A stretch of DNA of 64,000 nucleotides from Rebecca billardiae RCC1528 (lineage: Eukaryota > Protista > Haptophyta), in the NCBI GenBank assembly GCA_965240325.2, contig OZ251230.1:2356001-2420000 (forward strand), written 5' to 3'. The notes beneath the pieces were generated by a model that searched no databases, was not told where the DNA came from, and saw only the letters and a list, made by a program, of their open reading frames with translations. Both the position numbers and the translations under genes were made by a program. Of this stretch, positions 20,058-63,598 are shown piece after piece; positions within the stretch are counted from its first letter, which is position 1; each line of letters begins with the position of its first letter.

Positions 20058-20201
<144 letters not shown>

Positions 20202-32747: not shown

Positions 32748-33012
32748 TTGTTGCACAGCGCGCCGGCGCGAGTTCATGCACGACGAGCGTGGCGTTTTTT
32801 TCTTTTTTCTTCCCTCTGGCCTGGTCCGCACACCCTTGCAAAAAAACTGTTCGTCATCACTGCCACTGTTTCCCCAAGCCTTGCCCCAAGCAAAGGACCA
32901 TCAAATAAAGTACCAATAAGGGAAAGGGACCTCCCTTGCAAATACCATGGTCCTTTGCCCCAAGCGGGCTCGCGTCGAGCCCGCTCGGCCTTCCCCGTCC
33001 GGAGGCTGAACA

Positions 33013-34371
33013 ATGCCGGATCAAGAGAGCGGTGCTTCCGGGACCAACCCTTGCTTCCGACCGGCTTGGCTCGGCGACGCACAACGCCAGCCGGTGCGCT
33101 ACGCGCACAAGCTGGCCGGCATGGTCGACGTGAGGAGCCGCAAGTGTGGTCACGCTAGCTGCACCAAGGTGCCTTCGTTCGGCATGCCGGGCGACGCGCG
33201 TGCCAGCCGGTGCGCTACGCACAAGCTGGCCGGCATGGTCGACGTGAGGAGCCGCAAGTGCGGTCACGCCGGCTGCACCACGGGGCCTCACTTCGGCATG
33301 CCGGGCGACGCGCGCGCCAGCCGGTGCGCTACGCACAAGCTGGCCGGCATGGTCGACGTGAGGAGCCCCAAGTGCGGTCACGCCGGCTGCACCACGCGGC
33401 CTCACTTCGGCATGCTGGGTGACGCGCGCGCCAGCCGGTGCGCTACGCACAAGCTGGCCGGCATGGTCGACGTGAAGAGCCCCAAGTGCGGTCACGCTAG
33501 CTGCACCACGTGGCCTAACTTTGGCATGCCGGGCGACGCACGCGCCAGCCGGTGCGCTACGCACAAGCTGGCCGGCATGGTCGACGTGAGGAGCCCCAAG
33601 TGCGGTCACGCCGGCTGCACCACGCGGCCTCACTTCGGCATGCCGGGTGAAGCGCGCGCCAGCCGGTGCGCTACGCACAGGCTGGCCGGCATGGTCGACG
33701 TGATGAGCCCCAAGTGCGGTCACGCCGGCTGCACCACGCAGCCTAACTTCGGCATGCTGGGTGACGCGCGCGCCAGTCGGTGCGCTACGCACAAGCTGGG
33801 CGGCATGGTCAACGTGAAGAGCCCCAAGTGTGGTCACGCGGGCTGCACCAAGCAGCCTTCGTTCGGCATGCCGGGCGACGCGCGCGCCAGCCGGTGCGCT
33901 ACTCACAAGCTGTCTGGCATGGTGTTCAGTCGGCACGCCGTCCCCAAGCGCAGGCTGGATGGCACCGGCGACCAGGGCACGCGCGCAGCGAAGCGACGGC
34001 ACAAACACACCGGCAGCATTGCGGCTGTCTCGGACGCCGCGCCGCAGCTGCCCGCACCGCCGCCGCTCGTCGCAGTCACCGTCGTCCGCTGGCGCTTGCC
34101 AGATGGCACGATCCACTCGGTTGATGACGGGGTGGTCGATGATGGTGCCCTTGCCCTGGACGAGCGGCATCAGCGTGGCAATGCAGGTGATGCCATCCGT
34201 GCTGCCCCTGGCAACTGCGACCAGGGACTACCGGCAAGCATCAACACTACCGCTGCGCCAGGACGACCATCATCATCGATGGCGGCGGGGGCAGCACAAC
34301 GGCGGCAACCACAGGACATACCTGTGGTGATGGCCAGGAGGGTCCCTGCCCGCGACGCTGCGGGCCGATGA
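33013..34371 (+). CDS. EsV-1-7-type cysteine-rich repeat protein (7 full 38-aa repeats) with bipartite NLS-like motif
   Basis: Unit KCGHAGCTxxPxFGMPGDARASRCATHKLAGMVDV, with C-x4-C...C-x2-H; 114-bp period from 33139. Followed by PKRR-x12-KRRHK. Confidence 0.75.
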   Translation: MPDQESGASGTNPCFRPAWLGDAQRQPVRYAHKLAGMVDVRSRKCGHASCTKVPSFGMPGDARASRCATHKLAGMVDVRSRKCGHAGCTTGPHFGMPGDARASRCATHKLAGMVDVRSPKCGHAGCTTRPHFGMLGDARASRCATHKLAGMVDVKSPKCGHASCTTWPNFGMPGDARASRCATHKLAGMVDVRSPKCGHAGCTTRPHFGMPGEARASRCATHRLAGMVDVMSPKCGHAGCTTQPNFGMLGDARASRCATHKLGGMVNVKSPKCGHAGCTKQPSFGMPGDARASRCATHKLSGMVFSRHAVPKRRLDGTGDQGTRAAKRRHKHTGSIAAVSDAAPQLPAPPPLVAVTVVRWRLPDGTIHSVDDGVVDDGALALDERHQRGNAGDAIRAAPGNCDQGLPASINTTAAPGRPSSSMAAGAAQRRQPQDIPVVMARRVPARDAAGR

Positions 34372-34943: not shown

Positions 34944-36795
34944 ATGGACGAGGAAGGGCTCGGCGCCTTCGAGGGCGGCCCCGACGGGCGGGCCAGCGCG
35001 TCGTACGTGCGGCAGGACGGGCCGTTCGTCATCACCGACCGGAGCCGCTCGGCGAACGGCCAGTACGCGAACATGTACTTCACCCGGCTCGCCAAGCTGC
35101 GCCAGCAGGTGCTCGAGCAGATGCGCGAGCGCTGGGGCGCGCTGCCGCAGAGCAAGACGCTCGACGTGGCGGAGGGCGCAGAGTGCGTGGTCCTCGGCAC
35201 GATCTACATGGACCTCAAGGCGAAGCCGAGCGCGCTCGAGGAGTACACCCGAGACCCCCTCGCCCCGCCCGTGCCGCCGCCCGCGCGGTACCGCGGCGCC
35301 GACACCGATCGCGTCTTTCTGGAGGACGAGGCGGGGCGGCTCGGGCTGGCGGGGGAGGCGCTGGCGTCCGTGCGCCTCGTGACGGGCGTCGTCTGCGCGG
35401 TGCGCGGCAAGATGAGCGACGCGGGCGACGTCTTCGAGGTGCGTGACGTCTGCTTCCCGGGAATCGCGCCGCAGCCGCCGCTGCCGCCGAGCGTCTCGCT
35501 CGAGCCGGCAGACGCCGAGCCGCGCGCGGACGACACGTACGTGGCGCTGGTCTCGGGGATCGTCGTCGGTGGTGACAGCGACGGCGGCCACGTCCTCGCC
35601 CTCCAGCTGCTCCTCGACTACGTCGCCGGCCACATCGGCGGCGGCGCCGACCTCTCGCTGCAGAAGCGCACGGTGCGTGTCGTCGTCGCCGGCGGGCTGG
35701 TCGGCCTCGCCGAGGGCGCGAAGGCCGGGCTGACGGAGCCGAGCAAGCCGATGCGGGTGCGTGCGCAGAAGACGCTGGCCAACTCGTTGCAGCAGCTCGA
35801 GGCGATGCTCACCCCCGTGGCCGCGACGACGCCTGTCGATCTGATGTCCGCGCTGGCGCGCTCGCGCCGCCGTGCATGCCAGCCCCGCCCCGCGCCGCGC
35901 CCTCGCGCGCGCCCACGGCCCGCCGCGCCACGGCGCCCTCGCCCTCGCCGCTGACCCTCGCACGCGCCTCTGCCGCCGCGCGACGCCCCGCCCCGCGCCA
36001 TGCGCCCGCTGGCACCCCGCCGCGCGCAGGCCGGGCGCCGGCGACCCGTGCAACATCACTATGCCTCAGCAGCCGCTGCACCCGTGCCTGCTACCCGTGT
36101 GCCACCGCTACCCGGCGTTCGCGTCGGTGACGAACCCGCACGCGTTCGAGCTCGCGGGCGTGCGCATGCTCGGCACCTCCGGCCAGCCCGTCGCCGACGC
36201 GCTCAAGTACGCCCAGGCGGAGGGCGGCGAGGCGGATTCCATCGGCGTGCTGGAAGACATGCTGAACTGGTGGGCGCAGCACGCGCCCCCGCGTGGCCCC
36301 CGCGCACGCGGCCCGCTCCGCTGCCCGCGCGCGCTGGCGCTCCGCTCTCCGCGCGCGGCGGCGGCGGCTGGTGGCGGCCGCGGCGGCGCGCTGTGCGCCC
36401 GCGCGGGCGCAGGCGGCGGCCGAGCGCGCCGCACCGCGCGCCGCACCGCGCGCAGCGCTTCCCGAATCACGACTGACGCGCCGGGCCGCGCCCCATCTCA
36501 CTGGCTGGGCGCTGCGCCGCGCAGGCGCCACATTGCGCCGAGCGCGCCCGACACGCTCCCGTGCTTCCCGTTTGCAACCACCGACCCGTTCATCACCGTC
36601 GAGTCGCCGCACGTCTTCTTCGCGGGGAACCAGCCCAAGTACGGCACGAAGCTGGTGCGCGGGCCGGCGGGGCAGGTGTGCAGGCTGGTCGCCGTGCCAG
36701 CCTTCTCCTCCACGCAGACCGCCGTGCTGCTGAATCTGCGCACGCTCCGCTGCCACCCGATCACGTTCGACGGGCTGTCGCACTTGCCGCCGTGA
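34944..36795 (+). CDS. POLD2: DNA polymerase delta subunit 2 (exons 34944-35845, 36030-36269, 36525-36795)
   Basis: QYANMYFTRL, LEDEAGR, LVTGVV, DLM|PGAGDP..MPQQPLH, VTNPH, LGTSGQ, W|RHIAPSAPDTL, PHVFFAGNQ, VPAF. Two GT-AG introns keep frame. Confidence 0.95.
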
Positions 36796-37060
36796 GGCCG
36801 GATCGGGGCTGTGCACTTGCCGCCGTGAGGCCGGATCGGCACCCCGACGCCGGGCGGCGGCGATCTGGTGCCGAGCGCGCGCCCTGGCCCGGGCTGGCCC
36901 TGGGGCGTTATCGGCGTCACTAGCAGCCCCGCCTGGCAGTGCGTGACGCGCACGAGCACGAGTCACCAGACGACGCGTCTGGGCACCGGGCGCCCCCGTG
37001 GCGCATGTGCGCGGTGTGCTCAGCATCATGCTGACTGACGATTGATCAACTTTTTTTTTT

Positions 37061-37730
37061 GGGAAAAGTTCAGAACCCCGCCGATTCGCGGCGGCTTGTG
37101 CAGAATCCCGCCAAATCGGCCAGAACCTCGCGAGGGGCTTTTCCGGACGCGATGTCCCCCAGAAGTCCGATTGTCGAACATTCGGGCAAGCCACGCGCAC
37201 GAAGATACCGAACCCCGCGATTGCGCCGAAACGGCGCAATCGCGTCTTTTGACGTCGCCGATTACGCGCAGTACCCGCGAAATGAACCCCGACGGCGAAA
37301 CACTTAATCAAACACGGGGTTCGCGTCGTTTCGACGCCCTCGCGTGCTGTTTCGGCCGCGGGGCCCCTCGCGGCTCTTCGGAGCCCGCAAAAAAGCCCCG
37401 AAGAGCCCCCATCGCCCCCACGCGCGCACCTCGCGCGAACGAGGTGCGCGCGCGCGCCCGACGCGCGCGCGCGCGCGCGCGTCGGGCTGCGGGCGGGGGG
37501 AGCGGGGGAGGCGCGCGATGCCGCCGCCTGCGCGCGCGCCGCCTCACGCGCGCGTGGCCTCCCGGCGCGCGCGCACGCGCTCTGTCCGCGTGCGCCTCCG
37601 TTGGTTTGCATAATGTGCACGCCCGCCTCCTGGCGAACTCGCGCGCGACGGCCGTGTGGCGCGCGCGCGCGCAGGCGGAGCTGGTTCGTGCGGCGTTACG
37701 CGCAAGCTACGTGCACAACATGCCGCCGCC
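37061..37730 (+). repeat. Left TIR of the MULE (670 bp)
   Basis: Reverse complement of 52234-52903. ORF-track translations across the two TIRs are identical. Confidence 0.95.
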
Positions 37731-40700
37731 TGCGCGCGCGCCGCCTCACGCGCGCGTGGCCTCCGGACGCGCGCGCAGGTGTCGCCCTTTGCCCGCTTTG
37801 GTGGTTGTACGACGGAACTGCTGCGCACGCAAGGACGATGGTGCGCGCGGCTGGGTGGCGGTGCTGCGCGCGGGCGGCTGGCAGAGGGTACTGCCTGCAC
37901 CGACGTGCGTGCCGGTGCCTCCAACGTCGCACCCCGCGCCCCCCACCCCCACCCCCCCCCCGCCCCTTTTGCCCGCCATCGTGCATCTGTTGCGCACCGT
38001 GCATCTGTCGCGCGCAGGCGGAGGCGTCATCTGACGTGGTGCAGCCCAGGCGCGTCGACGGCACCACTGTGCGCGCGTTGCGGATTGACGAGTTCGTCAG
38101 CGGAGCGGAGAGCGCGCTGAATGCTCTGCGGATGACTCCACAGAACACCCCGTGGGAGTTCAGCTTGGTCCTCGTGCTGTGCGTGCTGGGCTCGGTGAGC
38201 GCCGCCCAGGCTGGTGGTCGTGTTGGTGGCACCGGCTGCGTGCCGCCGGTGGTGTCGGATCTGGCGAGTGCGGAGGCGCTTCTCTGCTTCACCGAGTGCG
38301 TCGGTGTGCTGGCCTCAGCCGAGGCTGTACTGGACCTGGGCGGCGACATGGGCGGCTCTTGCGACAGGCTGTCTAGGCTGTCGTCTGCTGCCCTGTGGTT
38401 CCGCGCCCTGGCGTTTGCGGCGATGCATGGCGCCGGCTGCGCCGGCGCTCCCGGCGCCGAGCACTTGCCGGTGCCCACCTCGCTGTGCCCAGCTGGGTGT
38501 GACCCGGTGTCGTCGCCCCCGCCTGGCGATGCGCACGGCGCCGCTGCCGGAGGCGCTGCCGGCGGTGGGTTGCTAGGTCACGACCCGACCTCGGACTCGG
38601 GGGGGGGCTCTGTGGGCGGGGGTGCGCCGGCGCAACGGCGGCGGCAGGGGTCGCCGCCGCCGTTGCCTCGCGCCCCTGCTGCCATCGCGGTGCGTGCGGC
38701 ATGGGCGAGCTCGCCTCTGCAGGTGAAGGTGGCGCTCGCTGCGCTGTGCGCGCCCCGCCCGGACGCGGGGGACATACACGGCGTGTTCTCGACTGTGGAT
38801 GCGCGAGCGGGTGGCACAGGGGCTAAGCCGGCGCCGGCCGTGGAATACTACGCGCGCGCGGTGTTCGGCGCCGACGCCGGATGCCGCGAAGACCTCTTCG
38901 CCGCCTTTGTGCGCGTGGCGTCGGCGTCAGCCCCCGGCGTGTCCGACGCGCACGCGGCAGACCACCTGCGTACCCGTGCGTACACGAGCTTACGTGGGGC
39001 GCTGGCCCCCGCGCCGCCGCTTGCGGACCACGCGCTCTACATGGAGACGTCTTCGTCTGTGCAGGCGGGCCAACGGGCGGATCTGCTCTGGCGGGAACTG
39101 CTGCGCGCGCGCGCCACGTGGTTGCGCGCTGTGGACCAAGCGCTGCGCGCTGACGCCGAGTGCCGCCGTGCGGCCGGCCACGCAGTCCACGACGATGCAG
39201 ACGGTGCAGACTGCGACCGGCGGGTCGCTGCCGCGCGGGCGCTGCGCGCGTCCGTGTCTGACGTCGGCGACGACGGCCGCGCTGGGCTGACGGCCTTTCT
39301 CGACGCGTGCGAAGGGCGTGCGCTGTGCGAGGGCTGGCTGGCGCGGCCGTTGCTGCACGCGATCTCCGTCCTCGAGCGTCGCACTGTGTGGGCTGTCGTC
39401 ATCCCGCTCACGCCCGCACTGGTGCACGTCGGCGTGGGCGCACGTCTGCACCCGTTCCTCGACGCGACGTTCGCCGAAGCCTTGGTGGCCGATGCAGCGG
39501 TGGCGATGCCGCCGGTGACGCTGGTGGTGACTCTGGTCGGCGCGCACGCCGTCGCCGGCGCCGCCGCGCGCGTGTCCGGAGAAGCCGTGAGCGCGGTGTC
39601 AGGCGCTCTTTCGGCGGGGTGCCCTCGCCCGCCGGGGGTGCCGCAGGACCCCTCACCGGCCCTGCGCGCACCGCCACCGCGCCAAGCCCCGCCGAACACC
39701 CCCGCGTCGTCCCTGAGCCTGTGCGACATGCTCGTGCACAACTTGGCGGTCCAGCACGCGCTTCGCCGAGCCTTCGGCGACGCTGCGGCCACTGCCCACA
39801 GCGTTCGCATACCACCACACGCTGTGCAGGCGTTGCGCGACTACGTCTTTGTCCACGCCAGGTTAGGCGGGTCGGGCGACGCCTCCATGCCCCTCCACGC
39901 TGCGGACCATGCCCTCATCCGCACTGCACTCGCCTATCACTCCGCCGATGCCGCCGGCGTCGCCGCCGAGCAGCGCCGCTGGGGGGTGGGCGACCACGGC
40001 GCCGAGGCGGGCACGCCGACAGCGGTGCTGGACTGCCCACCATTCGCGGACGTGGTGACTACACTGCAGGCCTTCATGGAGGCGGTGTTCGACGTGGAGC
40101 ACTCCAGCCCCGTTCTCACTGCGTGGCACGTCTTCGCGCGCCCGTCGCCTGCGGACGCGCACGCGGGCGCAACCAGCGATGGCCAGACCGCAGCGGGCGA
40201 GGCCACCACATACGGCTGGCACGTGGACAGCGACATGGTGCACGACCCCCACGTCTGGACGGCCGTGCTCGTCGTGCACGTGCCGTCGCACCCCACGGGG
40301 GGGAACCCCTACCCGCTCGAGCTCCTGGACGCGGGCCCGGACGGACACCCCGTCGCCGCTCCGCTGCATGGCGGCGACGTGGAGGGCGGCGACGTGGCAG
40401 GCACCGTGCACATCTTCCCGTCCATGCTGTACCACCGCTCGGCGCAGGCGCCGCGGGGCGGGACCGCCCCTGCGCACAGCGACATGTCGGGGAAAAAGCC
40501 GCGGCGCGCGCACACTCTCGACGGCGATGTCATCAAGGCTGTGTTCTTGTTCGGGTCGCCCGAACTCGCCGCCGCGCTGCGCGCGGCGGGCCGCCACCGC
40601 AGCCCGATGGTGCTGGCCGCGCCGGCAGCCTCGCCTGCAGCTCTCGTCTCTGCGCCTGCGCCGCTCACGCCCCATCGCTTCGTCCTCACGCTCGAATCGG

Positions 40701-43700
40701 GCTTGCGGCACCTGTACAGCCGGAAGCTGCGCGCTGGCGCGCCTGGCGACGCGCAGGGCGCATTCCCCGCATTCAACATGGGCTCGCCCCAGCACCAGCA
40801 GTACGTGGCCGACTGCGTCGAACACGCGCTGGGCGACGCGCCGACGGCCGATCCCGAGGAGCTCTTGCGCGGCGTGACGCAGTGCGTGCATGTGCCGCCA
40901 GAACGCGCGCAGCGCCAATGGGCGCACTCGGCGCTTCTGCTCGCGCTCCCCGGTGCTGACAACGGCGACGCGTCGCTGACAGCTGCAGCCCGCTCGCCAC
41001 CTGCGGGCCCGCACGGGCAGCGCGACACGTCGCACGGCACGGGCCCTGTCCGTGCAGGGCCGGGGACACCGACGCCGCGCGGCGTGGACGGCCGCGCGCC
41101 AGGCGCCGACGCCGGCCCACGTCCTCCGGGGGCCATCAGCAGCTCGCCACCCGTCTGCCCCTGGCCTGCCCCCCCTCCCGCTGCGCGGGCGCCGCTGTTG
41201 TGCACGCAGGCGGACGCCTCCGCCGCCTGCACGAGCCCGTGTGTCGTCGTGGCGGTGCATGGCGCGCCGGCGTCCACGGGCTGTGACGGCGGCGGCGGCG
41301 GCGGAGGTGGTCCGCACGCCAATGCGCGCGTGCTGCGCGAAGGGTCCCCCGGCAGCGCCGATGTGCCAGACGGCGGCGAGGCGACTGGCGCGCATGGCGC
41401 CGGTGGCACTGCCGCCGCGGTTGCGCATTGCACGGCCGCGCCGACGCAGAGCGTGCTCGGCAACGCCGTGCGCCTGGGCGAGGAGCGCGTCGACGGCGCC
41501 GGACCGAGCGCGCTCGCGGGCGTTTTGGCCTCGAACGTCCAGGCTCGCGCCGTCGGTGGGCCTGGCACGGACAACGCGGACATGCCGCTGCCGCGGCCAC
41601 CACATGGTACCCTGCACTTGGCGCCACACGAGCTCAGGCTGGCATTCCGACCCGGCCAGGCCGCTCATGTCGGAGGCCACTTTCACGCGGCGACGGCGAC
41701 CGACGAACAACGGCAGGCTGCGAAGGCAGTGGGCACTGTTGTGCAGGACCTCGGCCGCAGTCGCTCGGCGCACACGCGTGCAGCTGCGAGCGGCAACGCA
41801 CCCCTTTTCGTCCTGAGCGCGGACTGGCAGACGCTCCTCCTCAGCGAGGATGGCGCGGGGGCCGTGAGTGGTGTCATCTCGCAGCCGGACGCCGGCAGTG
41901 CCGCGCTCGCGCGGATCGACGAGTGGGAGGCCACCGACCCACTCATGCTCTGTGAGGACGAGAGCGCGCGCTTCTGTCCCAGCGGCGACCGCGACGATGT
42001 GTCCGACGACGCTCGGGAGGGCTCCGCCCACGCTGGCGCAGCCGGTGCGTCAACTGCGCACGACCCGCTCGCGGCGCTTGTGACGTGCCCCCCGTCCGGC
42101 GCGTGCGCGCAGCCTACGCCCGCCACGCGCACGGCCGTCCCAGGCGCAAGCGCCGCGGCAGGCGCGCAGGGCCAGCCCTTGCCACAGCACCACGGCGGAG
42201 ATGCCGAGTACCACCCACTGCCCAAGCAGTCCAGAGCGGGGCAGCACCATGCGCTCGCGCCCGTGGAAGGCTGGAAGGTGTTGGGCTCGAGGCCGCCACG
42301 CCCGCACACGGAGGTGGTCCGTGACTCCTCGTTGGCGAGCGACACACTCGTGCGACCCGGCACGCGCTTCGAGCGCCTCGCGGACGCCATCACCCTCGCA
42401 GCGGAGTGCGCCGTGCACCGGCGGATCATGCCGCCGTCCGCCCAACTGGACCATTCCAAGCTGAGGGTGACGTGCACCACGCCGAACTGCGCGTTCCGTG
42501 TGCTGGTGGGCCCCGCGCCGGATCACGCCGTGTGGGGCCGACCGGCGTGGTACGTGGAGGCATCCTCCTCACACAGCCCGGACTGTTACAACAACGCCGG
42601 CGGCGCCGGCTCGCGCGCGAACCCAGTCACCTCGCCGAGTCGGTCGCGGACCAAGGCGCGAGTGCGCGTGTGGCCCTACTCCGCCAAGCAGTTGGGCAAG
42701 GCCGTCGAGCACGACTGGCGGGCGCGCTTGCGCGAGCGCGGCGCCACGCACGCGCAGTTGGCGTACGGCGTCACGGAGAGCAAGGCCGTCGCGCGCGCGC
42801 TCGTCCCGGAGAAGGTGGGTGAGAGCCTCGTGCGCAGGGCGCTCGCCGTCGCGCGCGAGCAGATTTACGGCGACGACAGCGCCATGTCGCGCGACCTGGT
42901 GGCAGTGACCGCCGGGCTCTCGGCGGAGGGCAACGCGGTCGCGCCGATCGTCTTCGCCGCGGACACAGTGCACAGCGACGTGCTCGCGATGTTCCGCCGT
43001 GTGCACGACAGCGCCCAGCGCTCGGTGCCGCTCGGCGCCAGGCGGCCCTTCGACCCGGAGGAGCCCTCGGTGAAGCGCGCCATTGACGAGGTGCGCGGGA
43101 AGAAGGCCGTCGGTGGCTTCCACTACGTGCCCAAGCAGGCCAAGCAGCTCTACCGTGAGCACTTCCTGGCCAAGGGCAACCGCGCCGTGTTCAGCGACGC
43201 GTGCCACCTGCACAGGCCGGCGAGCGGCGGTGGCAAGCGTGCCGGTGTGCGCCCCCCACCCCACCCCCCCCCCCCACCCCTTCCCCCCTTCCCCCCTTCC
43301 GTGTCCTGCAGGCCGCACACCCACGCACACACACACATGCACACCCGCCCTGGCACGCACATTCACCCGCACCCCGGCCTTCTCCGCCGGTGCCACCTGC
43401 GCGCGTCACAGGCATGCTCTTTGTGACGCTCGCAGTGAACGCCAACGGGCAGCTGTTCGTGCTCTGTGTGTCGTACATCGTCGACGTCGAGTGCCTAGAC
43501 TCGTGGTGCGCGCACGTGCGCTACTTGAAGCAGGAGCTGGGCGGTGACGACGTGTGGAACGTCGACGACTCCGTCACCATCTCCGACGGGCAGAAGGGCC
43601 TGCGCGGCGCGTGGAAGCTCCTCTGCCCCCGCAGGCACCTGTTCCTGTGCACCTTCCACAAGCGGGACAACTTCATCACGGGGTACGCGCACACGGCGAA

Positions 43701-46700
43701 CGACGTCAACAAGATCCTGGAGGTCTTCGACCGGTGCGTCCAGGCGTTGTACGTCGAGGACTTCGACCGGGCCTGGGCGGAGATGCCCGAGTCGGGCAAG
43801 CGCATCATCGATCTCATCCCGCGCGCCGAGCTCTTCCCTGTCTTCGCGCCGGTGTGGATGCGCGGCTACGTCACGGGCGCGCCCGCGGAGTCGTTCATGA
43901 AGTGGCTGCTCCCTGTGCGCAAGTCGCAGGGCCCGGTGTGGATGCTGCTCGACCTGCACGACAACCTCTACCGCCTCTTCGCCACGCACCGCGCCGTGGC
44001 CGTGCGCCACGCCCTCAACCCCGACCCCGATCGCGACCTGCACGGGCTGCCACCGCGGCACGTGCCGTACGTGCGCGGCGCAGTGCAGGACGCGCGCGCC
44101 ATGGGCGGCGCCGAGTGCAACCTCGTCGCCGACGGCGAGCACGCCGGTTGCTACCGCGTGCTGAGCACCACGGACCAGTCCAAAGAGCGCTTTGTGCACC
44201 TCGACAACTTCCTGTGCTGCGGGCTGCTTCGCCGCAAGCGCCTGCCGTGCTTGCACTTCTGCCTCGTGTGCAACCGCGTGAACGAGCCGGTGTGCTCGCT
44301 CCTCCCCGAGGACATGCGCAGCGCCACTTGGTACGCGCAGGTCGGGCTCGGCGTCACGCAAGCCCCGACGGGCGCAGTGCTGTCCATCACGAAGCTGGAC
44401 GTCATCACGCCGCCGCGGCGCCTCGAGGACGCTGTGCAGCCCCTTCTGCTACCGTCACAGCAGTTGCAATCGCTCTTGGCGGAGTACGTCGCCGTGCCGG
44501 CGATGCCCGCGCGCGCGGGCAGGCCGGCGAACGCGGACCGCGCGCCCAGCTTCTGGGAGCGAGGGCCGCGCGGAGGCCGCGCCCGCCGCGCGCCGCACTC
44601 GCGCTCCGAGTACGACTCAGTGCCCATCGGGCGCTCGACGCAAACGTACGTGCGGCCCTTGACCGCCGACGGCGGCTTCGCCGCGCGCGTGCGCGAAGCG
44701 GCGAACTCGACGCTCGAGCAGGTGCTCAGTGAACTCCCGTCGCACCTGTACGGCATCGCGCTCCAGGACGTGCTCTGCACGCGCAACGTCAACGTGCGCG
44801 TGGGCGGGACCGTGGCCGCGCCTCAGACGTTCAACCAGCGGCTGCGCGCCTGGTCCACGTTCGACGCGAGGACGGCGGCCCTGCTGCGCTGCTGCGCGTG
44901 CTACGACCCGCAAGCCGACGACCTCGGCGCTGCGTGGCCGGCCAGCGCGCCCCCGGTGGACCCCAGGCTAACGTGCCAGGGGTGCGCGTGCTTCATCCAC
45001 GCACCCGCGCAATGCGAGTACGTGTGGCATCTGGGTCCGATGGACAGTGGGCTGTACATGTGCACGTGCTGCTACTTCCTCCTTGTCGCCGGCGCGTGGA
45101 AGAAGCTGCGCGCGTGGCGTGCCGAGGAGGAAGGCGCGCCGGCTGCGGCGCCGCCTACGGGTGCCAGGCCGCAGGAGGCGGCGTACGCGCGCGGGCCCGG
45201 CGCGCCCCGTGCGCGCGCTGGCGGCGGCGACGGTGCGTGCGGCGGCGGGGGCGCGCGCGCCTCTGGCGCGCCAGGTGGCTCGCGCACACCTGACGCCTCC
45301 GCCGGCGCGGGTGATGCGCCCGCGAAGCCCGCCCGCCAGCCGCGCAAACCGCGCAAGAAGCCACACAGCGCGCGGGCGTACGCGGCCCAGGCTCCACCGG
45401 GCCCGTCAGTGCGCTTCGGCGCAGCGCCGCCGGCGTCGCGTGGCGCGCCGCCACGCACCTCGACGGGGGCGGGCGCGGGCACCGACGCAGCTCACGCGCG
45501 CGGCGGTGCAGTGCCACCGCCGGGTGCCGTGCCAACGGCGCCCGCGGATGACGGCGACGGTGCAGGCCCTCCTCCCTGCGCGGGCACGCCAGGGGTGGCC
45601 CCGCCAGCGCCCGGCGCGGCGAACGTCATGGCGGAGGCTGAGGCGGCATACGCCGCTCTCGGCGACCGCCACGTCGCGGTCAGGAGGGTGGTCACGAGCG
45701 CCGCCGGCGTGGGCGAGGCGTCGGCCAACCGTTTCATGCGTGCGCGCGAGCGGGCGCCCGCGCACACGTCGTTGGACAACACACTGCGCACCGCCTGGAA
45801 GACCGCCAGAAGCATTCCCGACAAGATCATCGCCCAGTTCGCAGCGCGCGCGCGGCCGGGGCGCTCGGAGGCGGGTCCGGCCGGGGCGGACGAAGGCTCT
45901 GGGTTGCCTGGCACCGCCGCGCACGAGCCGCCGTCGGCCGCAGCCCAGCTCATGCCCGAGCTCGGCCTCCCACTCGCGCGGTGGGACGCGAGCCGCGCGC
46001 GCGCGCGTGAGGCGCCATTGCTGGCGACGTCTGCCACCGGCTTGCCATTGTGGTCGCTCGCCGGGGACGGTCGGGGTGGGTCCAGGGCCCCGACCGTGGC
46101 CTACGTGCTGAAGACGTTGTTCGGCCCGACGGTGCGCGAGGTGGACGTGCCCGGCGACGGGGACTGCTTCTTCCACGCTATCCTTGCGCACGATTCGGCC
46201 GCCCTCGCGGCGGCCCCCACGCGCGCGGCGCGCAACGCGCTTATGCAGCGCATGAACGTGCGCGCCAAGCGCGCGCGCTCCGCGACGGTGTCCTACATGG
46301 CGTCGTTCTTCCACCCGACCGGCCCCAACGAGTGCGGGCCGACGATGTGGGATGGGCAGCCCATGGACGGCGAGCTTGCGGAGCGTGAGCTCGCCGGCGT
46401 CCTGGCCGTGCGCGCCGACGAGCTGCGCAAGCGCGGCACGGGCCAGGACATGGAGCTCGAGGGCCGATGGGCGGGCACGAACCGGACCAGCCTGCGGTAC
46501 GCCGCGCGTTTGTACCGTGGCGGCGCGGACTACGACTCGGCCTGGGAGGAATTCCGCCGCGGTGGCGAGTGGACGCCAGGCTCGCAGACGCAGGGCAGCG
46601 CGTCGCGTGCGCTGGGTGTGCACGTCCTGGCGTTCACCGCGCGCGGCGATCGTATGGACGCAGACAAGGTGAACCTGTTCCCGCGGGTGTCGTTGTGGCG

Positions 46701-47385
46701 GGCGCCCAAGCGAGCGCGCGATGCGGCGGCGGACAGCACCACACGCCGGAGGTGCTTCTCCGAGGGGAGCTTCGACCTGACGAAGAAGGAGGACGTGCAC
46801 GCGTTGCGCAGGCTCGACCTCGGCACCATGGGCACTGACTGGGTGGCCGTCGTGTACCACCCAGGGCACTTCCACGCGGTGGTGGATACCGGCGCGGACG
46901 CCGCGCCGGCCGCGCGCGCGCTCTCCGCGGGCGGCGAAGGGCGCTGGCCGTACGTGGCGGCGTGCGCGGAGCGTCACTGCGCGAAGGCGCGTGCACGCTG
47001 GCGTGCGCTCGTGGAGGACGACGAGACCCACAACGGGGCGTCGGAGTATCAGCCCACGCTGGCGCCACACATGGCCGACCGCATGCTGCTCTCGCGCGTG
47101 GACGAGGTCGGGCTCACTCGCTACCGTGGCGCCACGCGGCGCTTCAACACGCGGGTGTTCTCATTGCACGCGCCCGCCGGCCCCGAGGACCCCGCGGAAG
47201 GCGAGCCCATGGACTACGACAGCGCGGACGACGACCGTGTCCTCGCGCAGCCGGCACTGGACTCCCGCCTTGACGGGTACGAGGAGCACTCAGCCACTCG
47301 TTTGCTCGCGCGCTTGTCGCGGGAGCGCGCCCGGCGCGCGTCTGCGCACGCGCCCGCGGGCGCCGACGGCGGCAGTGGCGAGTAG
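37720..47385 (+). CDS. MULE transposase polyprotein (~3,120 aa; predicted exons 37720-37887, 38018-43244, 43412-47385): 2OG-Fe(II) oxygenase-like domain, MuDR-type Zn DNA-binding domain, DDE core, SWIM, PHD-like finger, OTU-like protease
   Basis: Oxygenase-like YGWHVD...HIFPSMLYH...IKAVF. DBD VTCTTPNCAFRV...HSPDC. DDE core FSDACHL, ISDGQKGL, CTFH, PAES. SWIM CCG...LPCLH. PHD-like CCAC...CQGC...H...C...CTCC. OTU VPGDGDCFFHA...YHPGHF. Exon 1 and the second donor site are inferred. Confidence 0.8.
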
Positions 47386-48179
47386 ATTGGCGGATGAAGT
47401 GGCGTCCGTGCCCCGCAGTGGGAGACGGGCACGTTACGGGGAGTTGGGCACGTGCGGGGGAAGAGATGTGGGATGTGCGTGACTGGGACTGCATGTCGAT
47501 GGGTGCATAGATGGGGGCTCGGTGAATTCGTGCCGCTTCAGATGGTCGGGGGCTGAGTCGCCCGCGGACAAGTGCAGGGCTGCCTCAGGCTCAGACGGCA
47601 CGGGGAGCTGTGTGATAAGGGTGCTCCGCATCGGCGGCACCAGCGGCTGTGTACTCCTACTGAGGCAGGTGACACTGAAGGTGACACGCCAACTCGCGGC
47701 GGGAAGCACTGTCTGTGCGGACGACGCGCACTCGGACGAAGCCGGCCGATAGAGCACCGTCGGCCAAGGACTGCGGGTGCAACTGCATGGCGGAATACGG
47801 CAAGGGCAAGGTCACTGCGCATGCGCATGCGCGCGCAGTCAGACGGTGCACCGGGTCGGCGCGCAGGCACCGGTGAGCAACGGGGGGTCAGGCGGTGTGC
47901 ACGGGCGTGGTGCCGCGCGCACCGGAGACGCGCAAGCCCGTCGCGCGGCGCGCACCAGTATGGATGGGCACGGGTAAGTGCGACACGGTGTCGCGCACTG
48001 GCCGGGCGCGCGGTGCGCGCGCACGCCGCCGCCGCGCCGCCCCACCGGCCCGGGCGCGTGCGCCCAGCGCGTGAGCAGCGACGGCGGCGGCGCACTGCTG
48101 GCGGCGGTGTGCGCCCTCGGCAGCACCGCAGCCGACGTGCGTTCGGCGCACCGCCTCCGCCCAGCGGTCGCTCGCACGG

Positions 48180-51100
48180 TCAGCGCCGGCTCGCGCCCTC
48201 GCGCGGCTCGGTCCTTGCCACCAAGCGCTCAAGGACAGTGCCGGTCTGTGCCAGCATGCGTGTGAGATCGTCTTGCTGCGCGCGCATGACGGCCAATTCG
48301 CGCTGGCCCGCTGCGGTGCGCTCTTCGATGCCGGCGGTGCGCGCTTCGATGCCGGCGGTGCGCTCGTCGAGGCCGTCGAGGCGCGTCGCGACGGGTTCGA
48401 TCATCCGCGACAGGCGCGCCGCGACAGCCTCGACGACCTCGTCGTCGCCGCGCCCGTGCTCGTCGAGGTTGATGGTGGGCACGTCGGCTTGCGAGGCGCG
48501 CGGCTGGGCAGCGCCACGTCTGGCGACTTTCCCCCCGGCCGGCGCGGCGCCCCGGGCGGGCGCGCGCGTGGTGGGCGGGCGGGTGGTCGCGGCATCCGGG
48601 GGCGCGGCAGCCCGTTGCGTGGAAGCGCGCCGCTTGCGCGCTCCGGTGGCGGCGGCAGCCGCGGGCGCGTCCGCGGGCGCGGGGGGGTGCCACGGCACGT
48701 CCAGGCGCCCCGCGTACATCTTGGGCGCGTCGGCGCCGTTCGGCGCCTCGGCGCCGCCCGCAGCGCGGGACGGCACGGGGGCAGCCGGGTGCGTCCACAG
48801 CACGTCATTGCCCCTCGGCTTCTCGTCCTGCATGATGGTGAAGCACAGCCCGCGGAAGTCGGTGATGGGGGCAGTCTCGTCCCTCAGGCCACGCTCCGTG
48901 GGGGGCGGCGCGCCAGCTCCCTGCATGGGCGGGTACGTGCACACTGTGAAGAAGAGCGTGCAGAAGTTGCCCGCGGGCTTCGGCACGCCGCGCGTGCGCT
49001 TCTGTGACTTGCGGTTTCTCATCTCCTCATACCTCCACGAGTGCGTGTTTCCGGGCACGAACATGAAGGAGAGCAAGTCCGCCGGGTTGGGCGCCCACTG
49101 CGACCCCGCATCAGCCCCCTCCACCTGGTTGTACAGGGCGATGCAGTCCTCGGACACTGCCTGGATCTCGAAGTACGGGATGCGCGCGTCGGCTGACGGC
49201 GCAGCGGACTGCTTCTGCTGCTGCTTGGCGGTGCCCCCCGACGTCGCGTCGGCGCGCGCGCCGTCGGCGCCGTCGGGGGGCGGGAGCACGAAGCGCGCGC
49301 GCGCGACGCGGACCTTGGTGAGGAACGAGTACTCGTCCGCGCGCAAGGTTTGGTAGACGTCTGCCAGCGCGTCGTAGCGCAAGTGAGGGAGGGAGACGCG
49401 CTGCGTCAGCACCGTGGCGCACGCGATCGCCGCTGCCAGGCACGTCGCCCCGGCCCCACGGCGTTTCAGAGCCTCCGCGTGGCACGCGAGTGCCGCGAGG
49501 GTGTCGCCTGAGTCGCTTCCGGCGAAGCGCGAGAAGTCGAAGGACGTGCCCATGCGCTCAGCGAGATCGAGCCAGGGTTCGATCGGCGTGCCCTCGAGCG
49601 CGCACTCGGTCGGCCTCCCGGCGAGACACACCACACGCAGCACATCCAGCAGGTCGCCAGAGGCGGGCGTGCGGTACAGCTGCGGCAGCGCATCGGGCGC
49701 GTGCGCGCGGAGACTCCCCAGGAACGCGAGCACGCCCTCTGCGATGTACGCAGCGTGCTGCAGGTGCGACTTGGGTGCGCCCGCGTCCGTCCACGTAGTG
49801 GGAGCGGCGACGCCGGTGAGGGCCGTCCAGCCCTGCGCCGTGAGCAGAATGTCGGGCGCCGCGAGCATCCCCGACGGGATTTTGGCCACCTCGTCCTCAG
49901 CGTCGAGCACCGGCGCGCCGCTAGTGCGGCTGGCTGGGCCGCCGCCGGCGCCGCCCGCAGCCGCGCGTGCGCACGCGGGCTCATCCGGCGGTGGCGGCGC
50001 CATGGACGCCAGCTGCACGGCGACGATGTCGCCTCTGCTCACGGCAGTGCCGAAGTCGGCGTCCGCGTAGTGCGTCACCTCGGCCGTCAAGGAGGTGACG
50101 AGTTCGGCTTGCTGCAGCACGCGCCACCCGTCCGTGTCCCGGACGGCGTACGCCATCTGCAGCGTCGCCTCCGCGGACGGGCGCGCCGCTGCGCCATCGC
50201 TGGCGTCGGCGCCATCGCCGCCGGCATGCGGCGCCGGGCGAGCGCGCGGGCGAGCGCGCACTGCCACCACGGCGTGCAGCAGCAGCGGAGGCGACGCCGC
50301 GGCGGGTTCCGACGAGGGCGTCGGCGCCGCGCCGCACGCCGCCGGTTTGGGCACCAGCGCGGGCCACACACGCGGGACGTTGGCGAGGTCGGCGGGGATG
50401 CCCAGCGCCGCGTGCTCAGCTGCGGTCCACAAGAGCGCCAGCGGCTGGCCCCAAGCCGATGTGCGCTGCGCGCGCGGCACGACCGACGGGCGCTCTGCGC
50501 CGGGCAGGGGCGCAGTGACGGCCAGGTGCGGGCCGGGGGCGTACGGCAAGGGCAACAGCTGGCGCCCCTCAGCCTCCTCAGCGCACTCCACGAAGTGAGC
50601 GCGCGCAGCGCGCAGGGCAGCGGCCGCGTCCGCGGCACCTGCGCCTCCCGGCGCCGGTGGTGTCGGCGGGGAGCAGGCGCTGAAAGATGCGCGCACCGCA
50701 GCCGCGACGGCGGCGGCCGGCAGGAGGGCGCCGGCTTCGGTGAGTTCGCGCACGCTCTCCACCGACGTGAGCACGGCGTGGTAACGGCGGACCACCGCCG
50801 TGCGTGAAGTCAGGCCGACCGCGTTTTGGGACGTTATTGTCCGCGCCCCGTCGCCCAGCTGCGCGCTGTGCTTGTCCATGAAGATCATGAACGACGGCTT
50901 CAGACGCGCGACAGGAGGGTGCTGCGTGAACGCCGAGGATCCGCGCGTGTCGAACGCGTGCAAAGCGGTCGGAGTGACGAAGACGGCGAGTGGCGACGGG
51001 AGTGGCGACGGCGCCGGCACCGACTGCCGCTTCGCGGCACCGCGCAAGACAGAGGTAGAACCGGCGGCGGCGCGCGGCGGCGTGAGGTGCTGGCTCACGC

Positions 51101-52244
51101 GCGCCATCATCTCCTCCGTAGTGACGCCGCCGGCATCGCCGGCGGCGTCAGCGGCGGCGGCGGCGGCAGCGGCGCTGCTGCCGCCGCCGCCGCCGCCAGG
51201 AACACCGCCGCTGCCGCCGCCGCCGCTGCCGCCGCCGCCGCCGCCGATCCCACCGCCGCTGCCGCCGCCGCCGCCTGCCCCATCGCTGGCGGCGGGGGGG
51301 ACTGCGGGGACGGTGGCGCCACCGCTCGCGGCGGCGCCGGCGCCGGCGCCGGCGCCGGTGGCGGCGGCGGCGGCGGCGGCAGCAGCGGTGTCGGCCGCGG
51401 TGGCCGCCCCGCCGGCACCGCTGCTGCAGGCGGGGCGGCCACCGGTGCCGGCAGGGCGGCCACCGCCGCCGACACCGCTGCTGCCGGCGCCGCCACCGTC
51501 ACCGCCGCTGCCGCCAGCGGCAGCGGCGGTGGCGGCAGCGGCGGTGACGGTGGCGGCGCCGGCAGCAGCGGTGCCGGGTCGGCGGCCACCGCCGCCGACA
51601 CGACGGTTCCCCCCCTTGGATGTAGTGGTGGCAGGGTCGCAGCGGCCGGTGTCGCCACCGCCGCAGCCGGCGGTGGCGACACCGGCGGCACCACCGGTGC
51701 CGCGACCGGTGGTGGCGGCGGCGGCGTCGCAGCACGTCTCCGTTGCGCGCAGGCCGCTGCGCACGCCTGCGCCGCCACCCTGGGCTGCACCACTGCCAGC
51801 ACCGCCGCCAGCGGCGACGCCGCCACCTGCATTAGCAAGTCGTGCGCTCGTGCGTGACGGCGCCTGCGAACCGGGCTGCGGCGCCGCCGCCCGCTGCGGC
51901 GACGCGCCGGGCGTGGCCACAGATGCGCCAACGCCCGTCGCGAGCGGCAGCTTCGTGAGCTGCTCTGGCGTCACCCGCCTTGGACTCGCTGCCATCTGGG
52001 GGTATAGAATCGTACCAGCTGCGAGCGCCCACTGTTCCGCGTCAACGTCGGGTAGCGGCCCGACGATGTACGTGTAAGAAGCGCGAGGCTTGCCGTCGCG
52101 CGTGGGGACTGCTTTGATCTCGCACGACAAGACAGTGGCTGGAATGCCCTCACCATCAGCAGACGCACGCTGCACGAGCACGTTCGACTTGACTTGGAAG
52201 TAGTCCTCTTTGGACTGCGGCCGCATCGACTGCGGCGGCGGCAT
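48180..52244 (-). CDS. Second MULE gene (1,354 aa, unknown function; positional analogue of mudrB), with Gly/Ala-rich linker and C-terminal coiled coil
   Basis: Uninterrupted ORF from the ATG inside the right TIR (MPPPQSMRPQSKEDYF...). Several globular-looking blocks and terminal heptads LDERTAGIEARTAGIEERT. Confidence 0.75.
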   Translation of the reverse strand: MPPPQSMRPQSKEDYFQVKSNVLVQRASADGEGIPATVLSCEIKAVPTRDGKPRASYTYIVGPLPDVDAEQWALAAGTILYPQMAASPRRVTPEQLTKLPLATGVGASVATPGASPQRAAAPQPGSQAPSRTSARLANAGGGVAAGGGAGSGAAQGGGAGVRSGLRATETCCDAAAATTGRGTGGAAGVATAGCGGGDTGRCDPATTTSKGGNRRVGGGGRRPGTAAAGAATVTAAAATAAAAGGSGGDGGGAGSSGVGGGGRPAGTGGRPACSSGAGGAATAADTAAAAAAAAATGAGAGAGAAASGGATVPAVPPAASDGAGGGGGSGGGIGGGGGGSGGGGSGGVPGGGGGGSSAAAAAAAADAAGDAGGVTTEEMMARVSQHLTPPRAAAGSTSVLRGAAKRQSVPAPSPLPSPLAVFVTPTALHAFDTRGSSAFTQHPPVARLKPSFMIFMDKHSAQLGDGARTITSQNAVGLTSRTAVVRRYHAVLTSVESVRELTEAGALLPAAAVAAAVRASFSACSPPTPPAPGGAGAADAAAALRAARAHFVECAEEAEGRQLLPLPYAPGPHLAVTAPLPGAERPSVVPRAQRTSAWGQPLALLWTAAEHAALGIPADLANVPRVWPALVPKPAACGAAPTPSSEPAAASPPLLLHAVVAVRARPRARPAPHAGGDGADASDGAAARPSAEATLQMAYAVRDTDGWRVLQQAELVTSLTAEVTHYADADFGTAVSRGDIVAVQLASMAPPPPDEPACARAAAGGAGGGPASRTSGAPVLDAEDEVAKIPSGMLAAPDILLTAQGWTALTGVAAPTTWTDAGAPKSHLQHAAYIAEGVLAFLGSLRAHAPDALPQLYRTPASGDLLDVLRVVCLAGRPTECALEGTPIEPWLDLAERMGTSFDFSRFAGSDSGDTLAALACHAEALKRRGAGATCLAAAIACATVLTQRVSLPHLRYDALADVYQTLRADEYSFLTKVRVARARFVLPPPDGADGARADATSGGTAKQQQKQSAAPSADARIPYFEIQAVSEDCIALYNQVEGADAGSQWAPNPADLLSFMFVPGNTHSWRYEEMRNRKSQKRTRGVPKPAGNFCTLFFTVCTYPPMQGAGAPPPTERGLRDETAPITDFRGLCFTIMQDEKPRGNDVLWTHPAAPVPSRAAGGAEAPNGADAPKMYAGRLDVPWHPPAPADAPAAAAATGARKRRASTQRAAAPPDAATTRPPTTRAPARGAAPAGGKVARRGAAQPRASQADVPTINLDEHGRGDDEVVEAVAARLSRMIEPVATRLDGLDERTAGIEARTAGIEERTAAGQRELAVMRAQQDDLTRMLAQTGTVLERLVARTEPREGASRR

Positions 52245-52903
52245 GTTGTGCACGTAGCTTGCGCGTAACGCCGCACGAACCAGCTCCGCCTGCGCGCGCG
52301 CGCGCCACACGGCCGTCGCGCGCGAGTTCGCCAGGAGGCGGGCGTGCACATTATGCAAACCAACGGAGGCGCACGCGGACAGAGCGCGTGCGCGCGCGCC
52401 GGGAGGCCACGCGCGCGTGAGGCGGCGCGCGCGCAGGCGGCGGCATCGCGCGCCTCCCCCGCTCCCCCCGCCCGCAGCCCGACGCGCGCGCGCGCGCGCG
52501 CGTCGGGCGCGCGCGCGCACCTCGTTCGCGCGAGGTGCGCGCGTGGGGGCGATGGGGGCTCTTCGGGGCTTTTTTGCGGGCTCCGAAGAGCCGCGAGGGG
52601 CCCCGCGGCCGAAACAGCACGCGAGGGCGTCGAAACGACGCGAACCCCGTGTTTGATTAAGTGTTTCGCCGTCGGGGTTCATTTCGCGGGTACTGCGCGT
52701 AATCGGCGACGTCAAAAGACGCGATTGCGCCGTTTCGGCGCAATCGCGGGGTTCGGTATCTTCGTGCGCGTGGCTTGCCCGAATGTTCGACAATCGGACT
52801 TCTGGGGGACATCGCGTCCGGAAAAGCCCCTCGCGAGGTTCTGGCCGATTTGGCGGGATTCTGCACAAGCCGCCGCGAATCGGCGGGGTTCTGAACTTTT
52901 CCC
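52234..52903 (-). repeat. Right TIR of the MULE (670 bp)
   Basis: Reverse complement of 37061-37730. Confidence 0.95.
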
Positions 52904-52978
52904 TTTTTTTTTTCATCATCGATCCATATCATACGGTACTTGTATATCATCTTCTCACTCTGCAGCAACCCGTGAACG

Positions 52979-54889
52979 ATGGCGGATTCGACGACTAGCC
53001 CTGCGGTCAGGCTCCTCTTACGCAAGTCGGCGCGTGGGGACGCGCGTGCGACGTTCCTTCTGGCGCGGCGGGCTGAGGATGGCGAGGGCATCGCACAGGA
53101 CCACCGCGAAGCCTTTCGCCTGTACACCCTCGCCGCTGAGCGCAGCTTTGCAGATGCGCAGACGAAGATGGGCCACATCTACGTGAACGGCGCGCTTGGG
53201 CAGCCAAAGGACCTCGAGGCAGCAGCGCGCTGGTACCGGCTGGCGGCCGAGCAGGGCTACGCTCCGGCGCAGTGCAATCTGGGCCTGCAGTACGCACACG
53301 GCAAGGGCGTGCCGCAGGACTGGGGCGAGGCTGTGCGCTGGTTCCGGCTGGCGGCCGAGCAGGGTTACGCTCAGGCGCAGTGCAATCTGGGCGTGCGGTA
53401 CGCACAAGGCGAGGGCGTGCCGCAGGACTGGGGCGAGGCGGTGCGCTGGTTCCGGCTGGCGGCCGAGCAGGGCCACGCACTCGCGCAGTGCAATCTGGGC
53501 CTGCAGTACGCACAAGGCGAGGGCGTGCCGCAGGACTGGGGCGAGGCGGTGCGCTGGTTCCGGCTGGCGGCCGAGCAGGGCGACGCGCAGGCGCAGTGCA
53601 ATCTGGGCGTGCAGTACGCACACGGCAAGGGCGTGCCGCAGGACTGGGGCGAGGCGGTGCGCTGGTTCCGGCTGGCGGCCGAGCAGGGTTACGCTCAGGC
53701 GCAGTGCAATCTGGGCGTGCGGTACGCACGAGGCGAGGGCGTGCCGCAGGACTGGGGCGAGGCGGTGCGCTGGTTCCGGCTGGCAGCCGAGCAGGGCTAC
53801 GCTCAGGCGCAGTGCAATCTGGGCGTGCGGTACGCACGAGGCGAGGGCGTGCCGCAGGACTGGGGCGAGGCTGTGCGCTGGTTCCGGCTGGCAGCCGAGC
53901 AGGGCGACGCTCAGGCGCAGTGCCATCTGGGCGTGCGGTACGCACTAGGCGAGGGCGTGCCGCAGGACTGGGGCGAGGCTGTGCGCTGGTACCGGCTGGC
54001 GGCCGAGCAGGGCCACGCACTCGCGCAGTGCAATCTGGGCGTGCAGTACGCACGAGGCGAGAGCGTTCCGCAGGACTGGGGCGAGGCTGTGCGCTGGTAC
54101 CGGCTGGCGGCCGAGCAGGGCGACGCGCAGGCGCAGTGCAATCTGGGCGTGCGGTACGCACAAGGCGAGGGCGTGCCGCAGGACTGGGGCGAGGCGGTGC
54201 GCTGGTTCCGGCTGGCAGCCGAGCAGGGCTACGCTCAGGCGCAGTGCAATCTGGGCCTGCAGTACGCACAAGGCGAGGGCGTGCCGCAGGACTGGGGCGA
54301 GGCGGTGCGCTGGTACCGGCTGGCGGCCGAGCAGGGCCACGCACTCGCGCAGTGCAATCTGGGCGTGCAGTACGCACAAGGCGAGGGCGTGCCGCAGGAC
54401 TGGGGCGAGGCGGTGCGCTGGTTCCGGCTGGCGGCCGAGCAGGGCCACGCACTCGCGCAGTGCAATCTGGGCCTGCAGTACGCACAAGGCGAGGGCGTGC
54501 CGCAGGACTGGGGCGAGGCGGTGCGCTGGTTCCGGCTGGCTACTCAGGGAGGGAGCGCACATGGGCACATTCGGCTTGGAGCGCTGACGCTGCACGGCAC
54601 TGGAGTGGAGCGTGATGTGGAGGAGGCAGCTCGGCTGTTGCACCGTGGCCAAGAGCTCGATCCAGCCCTCGGAGACCGTGTACGCGAGGTCCTGGCCGTG
54701 GAGGCTGGAGAGCGTGACGTGGTCTCCACGTGCTGCATCGCCTGCGGACGGACAGGCCGTGGGCTCAAGAAGTGCGAGCGGTGCCATGTGGCGGTCTTCT
54801 GCTCGCGTGAGCACCTGCGCAGCTCGTGGAAGGTGCACAAGCCCCACTGCAACGCGTGGGCTTCGCAGTGCGATGAGGAGGCAAGGTGA
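52979..54889 (+). CDS. Sel1-like repeat protein with C-terminal MYND finger (copy 2; 12 near-identical repeats)
   Basis: N- and C-terminal caps nearly identical to 18025-19731, but repeat number and order differ. Confidence 0.92.
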   Translation: MADSTTSPAVRLLLRKSARGDARATFLLARRAEDGEGIAQDHREAFRLYTLAAERSFADAQTKMGHIYVNGALGQPKDLEAAARWYRLAAEQGYAPAQCNLGLQYAHGKGVPQDWGEAVRWFRLAAEQGYAQAQCNLGVRYAQGEGVPQDWGEAVRWFRLAAEQGHALAQCNLGLQYAQGEGVPQDWGEAVRWFRLAAEQGDAQAQCNLGVQYAHGKGVPQDWGEAVRWFRLAAEQGYAQAQCNLGVRYARGEGVPQDWGEAVRWFRLAAEQGYAQAQCNLGVRYARGEGVPQDWGEAVRWFRLAAEQGDAQAQCHLGVRYALGEGVPQDWGEAVRWYRLAAEQGHALAQCNLGVQYARGESVPQDWGEAVRWYRLAAEQGDAQAQCNLGVRYAQGEGVPQDWGEAVRWFRLAAEQGYAQAQCNLGLQYAQGEGVPQDWGEAVRWYRLAAEQGHALAQCNLGVQYAQGEGVPQDWGEAVRWFRLAAEQGHALAQCNLGLQYAQGEGVPQDWGEAVRWFRLATQGGSAHGHIRLGALTLHGTGVERDVEEAARLLHRGQELDPALGDRVREVLAVEAGERDVVSTCCIACGRTGRGLKKCERCHVAVFCSREHLRSSWKVHKPHCNAWASQCDEEAR

Positions 54890-63594: not shown

Positions 63595-63598
63595 TATA

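Follow-up and report, generated by a model that had tools for sequence, protein, structure and literature searches.

A stretch of 187 amino acids encoded at positions 40034-40594 (+ strand) of a 64,000-nucleotide piece of the Rebecca billardiae RCC1528 genome (the window, which has a G+C content of about 72% and supplies all coordinates used here) shares a reading frame with the N-terminal portion of the transposase of a Mutator-like element (MULE). Sequence comparison supports a greater resemblance of this stretch to the 2-oxoglutarate (2OG)-Fe(II) oxygenases than to any other known family, on the basis of its motifs, its neighbours in the ESM Atlas and blocks that it shares with the E. coli protein YbiX. 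We regard its identity as an oxygenase as plausible but unproven. The reading that we tentatively prefer, with a confidence a little short of even, is that the stretch is a true, highly diverged double-stranded beta-helix (DSBH) domain of the PF13640 branch, that is, of the prolyl 4-hydroxylase or PKHD-YbiX type. If the oxygenase is real, its sequence features would place it in this prolyl/PKHD protein-hydroxylase branch and not with TET/JBP or AlkB.

Motifs and reading frame of the oxygenase-like stretch

A sequence-only reading of this DNA had proposed a 2OG-Fe(II) oxygenase-like domain fused upstream of a MULE transposase, on the strength of four peptides in the transposase frame. All four occur in the frame of exon 1, no more than 3 nt from where that reading had put them: YGWHVDSD at 40211-40234, WTAVLVV at 40256-40276, GTVHIFPSMLYHRS at 40400-40441 and VIKAVFLF at 40529-40552. 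Locating the motifs gives putative metal ligands at His 40220-40222, Asp 40226-40228 and His 40433-40435, and candidate basic residues at Arg 40454-40456 and Lys 40535-40537, all on the + strand. Numbered within the 187 residues, the ligands are H63-V-D65 and H134, which follow the HxD...H order and are 71 residues apart, the expected spacing being 50-80.

The open reading frame (ORF) that carries these motifs, 37601-43426 (+), runs for 1,941 codons and holds, besides the oxygenase-like stretch, a likely zinc finger and the first of the catalytic Asp residues of the MULE domain. No stop codon separates the oxygenase-like stretch from the zinc-finger-like one, which lies 1.9 kb downstream; from base composition, 8.4 stops would be expected in the interval 40600-42270, and the probability of finding none is 2e-4. 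The coding signature of 40001-40600 is strong, with G+C at codon positions 1, 2 and 3 of 0.72-0.78, 0.53-0.54 and 0.88-0.90, respectively, and over about 39100-43300 the exon 1 frame has a third-position G+C of 0.83-0.95 and a second-position G+C of 0.50-0.62. As a statement about the reading frame, then, the proposed fusion stands, and we infer that the stretch forms part of the mature transposase mRNA.

Comparison with the PF13640 family

We used the ESM Atlas to place the stretch among protein families. For the 187-residue cut, 25 of the 30 best clusters belonged to PF13640 (2OG-FeII_Oxy_3), with a top score of 0.93, 154 of 256 features shared and a recognition value of 2624. A longer cut of 340 residues gave nine PF13640 clusters out of 30, these nine being all of the named ones and the other 21 having no common Pfam family. 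Every named neighbour was PF13640 or PF13661, and PF13640 is the family that had been proposed beforehand from the motifs. Shared composition is not the cause of these matches, since the neighbours are AT-rich phage proteins whose composition is very unlike that of the stretch. The calibration of the method sets a limit on how the result is to be read: a third of shuffled proteins obtain ten matches to the same family, and 4-10% obtain a first match of at least 0.9.

The closest local agreement is with E. coli YbiX, in the two blocks that bear the iron ligands. The first reads TYGWHVD in the stretch and TYGFHVD in YbiX, identical at six of seven positions. The second, of the common pattern AG-x4-[FY]-P-S-x3-H-x6-R-G, reads AGTVHIFPSMLYH-RSAQAP-RG in the stretch and has identical spacing in YbiX. 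A Smith-Waterman alignment to YbiX scored 47, compared with 29.7 +/- 4.8 for shuffled sequences, a score reached by 3-8 of 1000 shuffles under standard gap penalties and by 24 of 1000 under the loosest setting. Among 844 natural 187-residue windows from the six frames the stretch ranked first against YbiX, and none of 833 natural decoy windows reached its score. We extended the comparison to a PKHD set made up of YbiX and 13 plasmid-borne PKHD homologues (37-73% identity). All 14 alignments gave z above 0, with a mean of 1.3 and values of 0.02 to 2.8 for the 13 proteins other than YbiX. Because the effect shrank across these 13 further homologues, we count the YbiX score as weak evidence.

Another way to view the resemblance is through alignment to the family as a whole. 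When the stretch was aligned by MAFFT, unguided, with 34 phage PF13640 proteins, its Y-x-x-H-x-D, GG and G-x4-F-P-S motifs fell into register, and H63 and D65 came to stand in register with the family ligands; H134 pairs with the YbiX ligand only in the by-eye comparison of blocks. Nine of 11 functional-motif columns were matched in this alignment, compared with at most seven in 300 shuffles, the columns having been picked after the alignment was seen. An hhalign comparison with the PKHD profile picked up two separate blocks, HxD and FPS...H, in the correct order and with a P of about 0.02 each. The phage set comprised 120 cyanophage PiuC-like proteins gathered from the seed P-SSM2, and the profile built from it matches prolyl 4-hydroxylases of solved structure at 5e-13. 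Two AlphaFold 2 (AF2) runs, described below, both placed strands where a DSBH needs them, at low confidence.

Set beside YbiX/PiuC and the prolyl 4-hydroxylases of PF13640, the stretch presents the same order of blocks: a strand, T-Y-G-aromatic-H-x-D, a hydrophobic strand, GG, A-G-x4-[FY]-P-S-x3-H-x6-R-G and a hydrophobic strand that carries a candidate basic residue. It differs from them in carrying insertions of about 18, 15 and 24 residues and in giving no significant profile score. Moreover, YbiX and the prolyl 4-hydroxylases are standalone enzymes of about 200 residues, whereas the stretch is one segment of a protein about 3,000 residues long. A further difference concerns the 2OG-binding position. 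In this superfamily an Arg or Lys on the last strand, some ten positions past the distal His, binds the C5 carboxylate of 2OG. YbiX has an Arg at +10, where the stretch has a Thr; the stretch has an Arg at +7, as in the 'RG' of YbiX, and a Lys (residue 168, in VIKAVFLF) only past the 24-residue insertion.

Alternative readings and possible function

Several results weigh against a PF13640-type oxygenase, beginning with that Thr in place of the 2OG-binding Arg and the displacement of the Lys. Cuts of 130, 178, 207 and 340 residues gave no match in Pfam, PHROGs or NCBIfam at E <= 10. A phmmer search of the 340-residue cut against 1.84 billion representative proteins returned none at E <= 0.001, a word-indexed protein search of the stretch returned none at E <= 10, and the 187-residue cut matched nothing among PDB sequences at E <= 10. 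The score of 15.7 obtained by hhalign against the phage PF13640 profile was reached by 51 of 300 shuffles, and when hhalign was run on the PKHD set under relaxed gap penalties, decoys outscored the stretch. The phage PF13640 hidden Markov model (HMM) found nothing in six-frame pieces of the window; over all conserved columns of the phage family the stretch matched 20, compared with 18 +/- 3 in shuffles. With the PKHD HMM it scored 2.4 bits, and four other decoy regions scored higher among about 420 independent natural windows. The 154 of 256 features shared in the ESM Atlas fall in the range of a chance match or a distant relative. AF2 returned a mean pLDDT of 35.1 from the single sequence and 36.7 when the stretch was aligned to 34 phage PF13640 proteins, with no confident fold in either case; the run with the borrowed PF13640 alignment might have been expected to reproduce the fold of that family, and in our judgement it neither supports nor refutes the fold. 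Finally, His and Asp each make up 7.5% of the 187 residues, a content at which chance alone should yield about one HxD, and the stretch does contain another, HSD. Given this composition, an HxD alone means little.

Other searches were similarly unproductive. The long cut matched dUTPase alone in the PDB (E=0.26), two scans of metagenome contigs and one of viral contigs contained no related locus, and tblastn against phages gave only chance matches in GC-rich mycobacteriophages. The absence of an HMM match weighs less here than it otherwise might, because the transposase core itself, of whose identity the terminal inverted repeats and target-site duplication leave little doubt, scores only 17 bits for PF10551, and the OTU-like motif further downstream has no Pfam match either. 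The part of the sequence-only reading that called the domain oxygenase-like is supported by the PF13640 neighbours and the YbiX blocks; no significant profile or sequence match and no predicted DSBH (pLDDT 35-37) accompany them.

These results could be explained without any oxygenase, and we take this to be a serious possibility. The stretch would then be a beta-rich or partly disordered piece of the N-terminal extension of the transposase, with some other fold, its motifs would be chance products of a His/Asp/Gly/Pro-rich sequence, and the sequence-only reader and the language model behind the ESM Atlas would have caught the same local patterns. Such an explanation accounts for profile, sequence and structure tests that are all negative or not significant, for a YbiX score that is the best of 14 family members with a mean z of 1.3, and for the same-family matches that a third of shuffled proteins obtain as well. 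It also agrees with the abundance of His and Asp, and with the frequency of a loose pattern, HxD...H...[RK], which recurs 36 times when the window is read in all six frames. It would nevertheless require a coincidence, namely that a chance neighbour should be the very family predicted beforehand. It must further contend with two ligand-bearing blocks spaced as they are in YbiX, and with the first rank of the stretch among 844 natural windows. A composite pattern (aromatic-HxD, hydrophobic strand, G-x-h-h-h-F-x-S-x(2-5)-H, basic residue) is unique in the window, although it was written after the sequence had been seen.

If the stretch does descend from an oxygenase, it may be a relic: a DSBH domain would have been acquired from a host or virus in the distant past, and would since have lost its catalytic activity and act purely as a structural spacer. 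MULEs are known to capture fragments of host genes (PMC6431247), and the extreme divergence, the three large insertions and the Thr at the canonical 2OG-binding position would all fit such a history. We consider it unlikely, since all three metal ligands are kept and the codon signature of the stretch is as strong as that of the transposase core. We reject a recently captured host prolyl-hydroxylase gene, because recent capture would have left detectable relatives and phmmer returned none at E <= 0.001 among the 1.84 billion representative proteins.

The least probable reading, to which we give very little weight, is a demethylase of nucleic acid or chromatin (of TET/JBP, AlkB or JmjC-like type) that strips the element of its silencing marks. 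Kyakuja-Dileera-Zisupton transposons carry TET/JBP genes, the dioxygenase there being a separate gene. What that system shares with the present one is the broad notion that a 2OG-Fe(II) dioxygenase can travel on a DNA transposon, which is the only sense in which it argues for a demethylase; the superfamily branch and the transposon superfamily are different, and here the stretch lies in the transposase frame. The PHD-like and OTU-like motifs in the same polypeptide speak for this reading too, likewise by analogy. Pfam searches, however, gave no match to the PF12851 (TET/JBP), PF13532 (AlkB) or JmjC models, neither Pfam nor the ESM Atlas provided sequence evidence tying the stretch to TET/JBP, all the named ESM Atlas neighbours are PF13640 or PF13661, and the blocks that match belong to YbiX and the prolyl hydroxylases. 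With nothing pointing to TET/JBP, AlkB or JmjC and every pointer leading to protein hydroxylases, we do not retain the kinship with TET/JBP or AlkB suggested in the sequence-only reading. Its proposal that the element demethylates DNA or RNA to escape silencing likewise finds no backing, the only kin indicated being protein hydroxylases of the PF13640 type.

Returning to the diverged PF13640-type domain that we prefer, we infer its fold, activity and substrate along the following lines. The stretch would be translated as a piece of the long N-terminal extension of a giant MULE transposase, and would have kept the iron triad H63, D65 and H134 while acquiring three lineage-specific insertions, each about 15-25 residues long. 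An active domain would depend on Fe(II), 2OG and O2 for the hydroxylation of a protein side chain, which could belong to a host protein or to the transposase polyprotein, and it would not oxidise methylated bases. More ambitiously, one can picture a transposase polyprotein in which an active prolyl-hydroxylase-type oxygenase, an OTU-like protease and a PHD-like finger are combined, and that hydroxylates and deubiquitinates host proteins or its own and so controls element stability or access to chromatin. We consider a scheme of this scope doubtful.

The element is at most a MULE with an extra accessory domain. Were the hydroxylase a working one, the significance would be a link from transposition or transposase stability to the oxygen or metabolic state of the cell, or to the modification of host proteins, and the element would illustrate the extent to which transposases can expand through the gain of enzymes. 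We know of no earlier case of a cut-and-paste transposase with an oxygen- and 2OG-dependent protein-modifying enzyme. Together with the OTU-like and PHD-like motifs, a hydroxylase would amount to protein-modifying cargo undescribed for any cut-and-paste transposon. If the domain is not real, what is left is an unusually large, otherwise ordinary Mutator-like element. In a search of an incomplete literature collection we came across no account of a MULE transposase with a 2OG oxygenase domain. C-terminal fusions of OTU and PHD domains to MULE transposases have already been described (PMC1702500), and a eukaryote-wide survey of MULEs (PMC6446971) makes no mention of oxygenase, OTU or haptophytes.

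The element, its transposase gene and their surroundings

The element occupies 37061-52903 (15,843 bp) and has the pattern of a Mutator-like element. Its terminal inverted repeats (TIRs) are 670 nt each, at 37061-37730 (+) and, as located by an inverted-repeat search, 52234-52903 (-), and they are 100% complementary. The termini read GGGAAAAG...CTTTTCCC. A run of ten T abuts both ends, at 37051-37060 on the left and 52904-52913 on the right, and forms a 10-bp target-site duplication (TSD). MULEs are recognised by long TIRs and a TSD of 8-11 bp, and both are found here (670 nt at 100% identity; T10 on both sides). Because the 670-nt TIRs are perfect and T10 adjoins both ends, we conclude that the element is of Mutator-like pattern, intact and very recently inserted. 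In a tblastn search of the 64-kb window, the proteins of the element matched only themselves.

Two large convergent sets of ORFs fill the element, 37601-43426 plus 43201-47385 on the + strand, which make up the transposase gene, and 48180-52919 on the - strand. The latter, a partner gene of 1,579 codons taken from the list of ORFs, starts in or near the right TIR, and its convergence with the transposase gene recalls the mudrA/mudrB arrangement of MuDR. Like the MuDR/MULE transposons whose transposase is fused to an OTU protease or PHD finger, the element combines long TIRs and a 10-bp TSD with a pair of convergent genes, a putative DDE core containing CxxH, and a SWIM-like finger; unlike them, it is 15.8 kb long, about three times the usual size, and encodes a transposase of about 3,000 residues.

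Exon 1 of the transposase gene, delimited by the open frame 37601-43426 and its codon-position G+C signature, which extends over about 38800-43250, was placed at 38132-43244 (+), its start being provisionally the in-frame ATG at 38132. Beyond about 43300 the coding signature shifts to the frame of ORF 43201-47385, and this change of frame points to a predicted intron of 167 nt at 43245-43411 (+), which is C- and CA-rich, of phase 1 and bordered by GT at 43245 and AG at 43410-43411. Taking out these 167 nt brings ORF 43201-47385 into register with ORF 37601-43426, and the intron would thus join exon 1 to the rest of the transposase. The predicted junction falls inside the MULE catalytic domain, with exon 1 ending VFSDACHLHR and exon 2, which extends over 43412-47385 (+) to the stop codon and is defined by its PF10551 match and by motifs read by eye, beginning GMLFVTLAVNANGQ.

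Within exon 1, a Cys/His-rich stretch (CTTPNC...HSPDC, 42461-42595, +) was read by eye and has no Pfam match; from its sequence it is likely to be the WRKY/FAR1-type zinc-finger DNA-binding domain usual at the N-termini of MULE transposases, where zinc fingers of this class have been reported (PMC1702500). At 40900-41800 the codon-position G+C flattens (0.82/0.76/0.78) and the translation becomes Gly/Pro/Ala-rich, with one run of eight Gly; this region is probably a disordered linker, and possibly an in-frame intron.

The catalytic domain starts at 43187-43244 (+) with VFSDACHLHR, which supplies the first Asp, and continues after the intron into the match to Pfam MULE at 43417-43659 (+). This match, to PF10551 in exon 2 (E=0.007, 17 bits, under the cut-off of 27.6), is the sole Pfam match of the whole gene, exons 1 and 2 having been searched as separate sequences. 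The D...D...CxxH motifs and the SWIM-like finger of the transposase were recognised by eye. Further motifs of exon 2, also read by eye on the + strand, comprise the CxxH motif itself (43648-43671), the SWIM-like CxC...CxH (44215-44262), a PHD-like Cys/His cluster (44974-45021) and, near the C-terminus of the transposase, both an OTU-like Cys box GDGDCFFHAI (46153-46182) and a His box HFHAVV (46867-46884). No Pfam match was obtained for the CxxH, SWIM-like, PHD-like and OTU-like motifs, nor, at E <= 10, for the C-terminal 827 residues of the transposase ORF, and the transposase core had no homologue among long proteins in a word-indexed search or in the metagenome and viral contigs scanned.

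Directly to the left of the element lies ORF 35872-36795 (+), which includes a stretch that we take to resemble the small (B) subunit of DNA polymerase, and this ORF may be a host gene adjoining the insertion site. To the right, an array of 108-bp tandem repeats at 53095-54690 begins about 190 bp past the end of the element. The same repeat forms a second array at 18144-19523, 33.9 kb away, the two holding 13 and 11 copies, respectively, which are 83-98% alike except for degenerate end units. The window also contains tandem arrays with a 114-bp unit (32990-33973, seven copies) and a 64-bp unit (5774-6223, six copies), as well as long (TA)n microsatellites at 20015-20230 and 63504-63660 within DNA that is otherwise 70% G+C.

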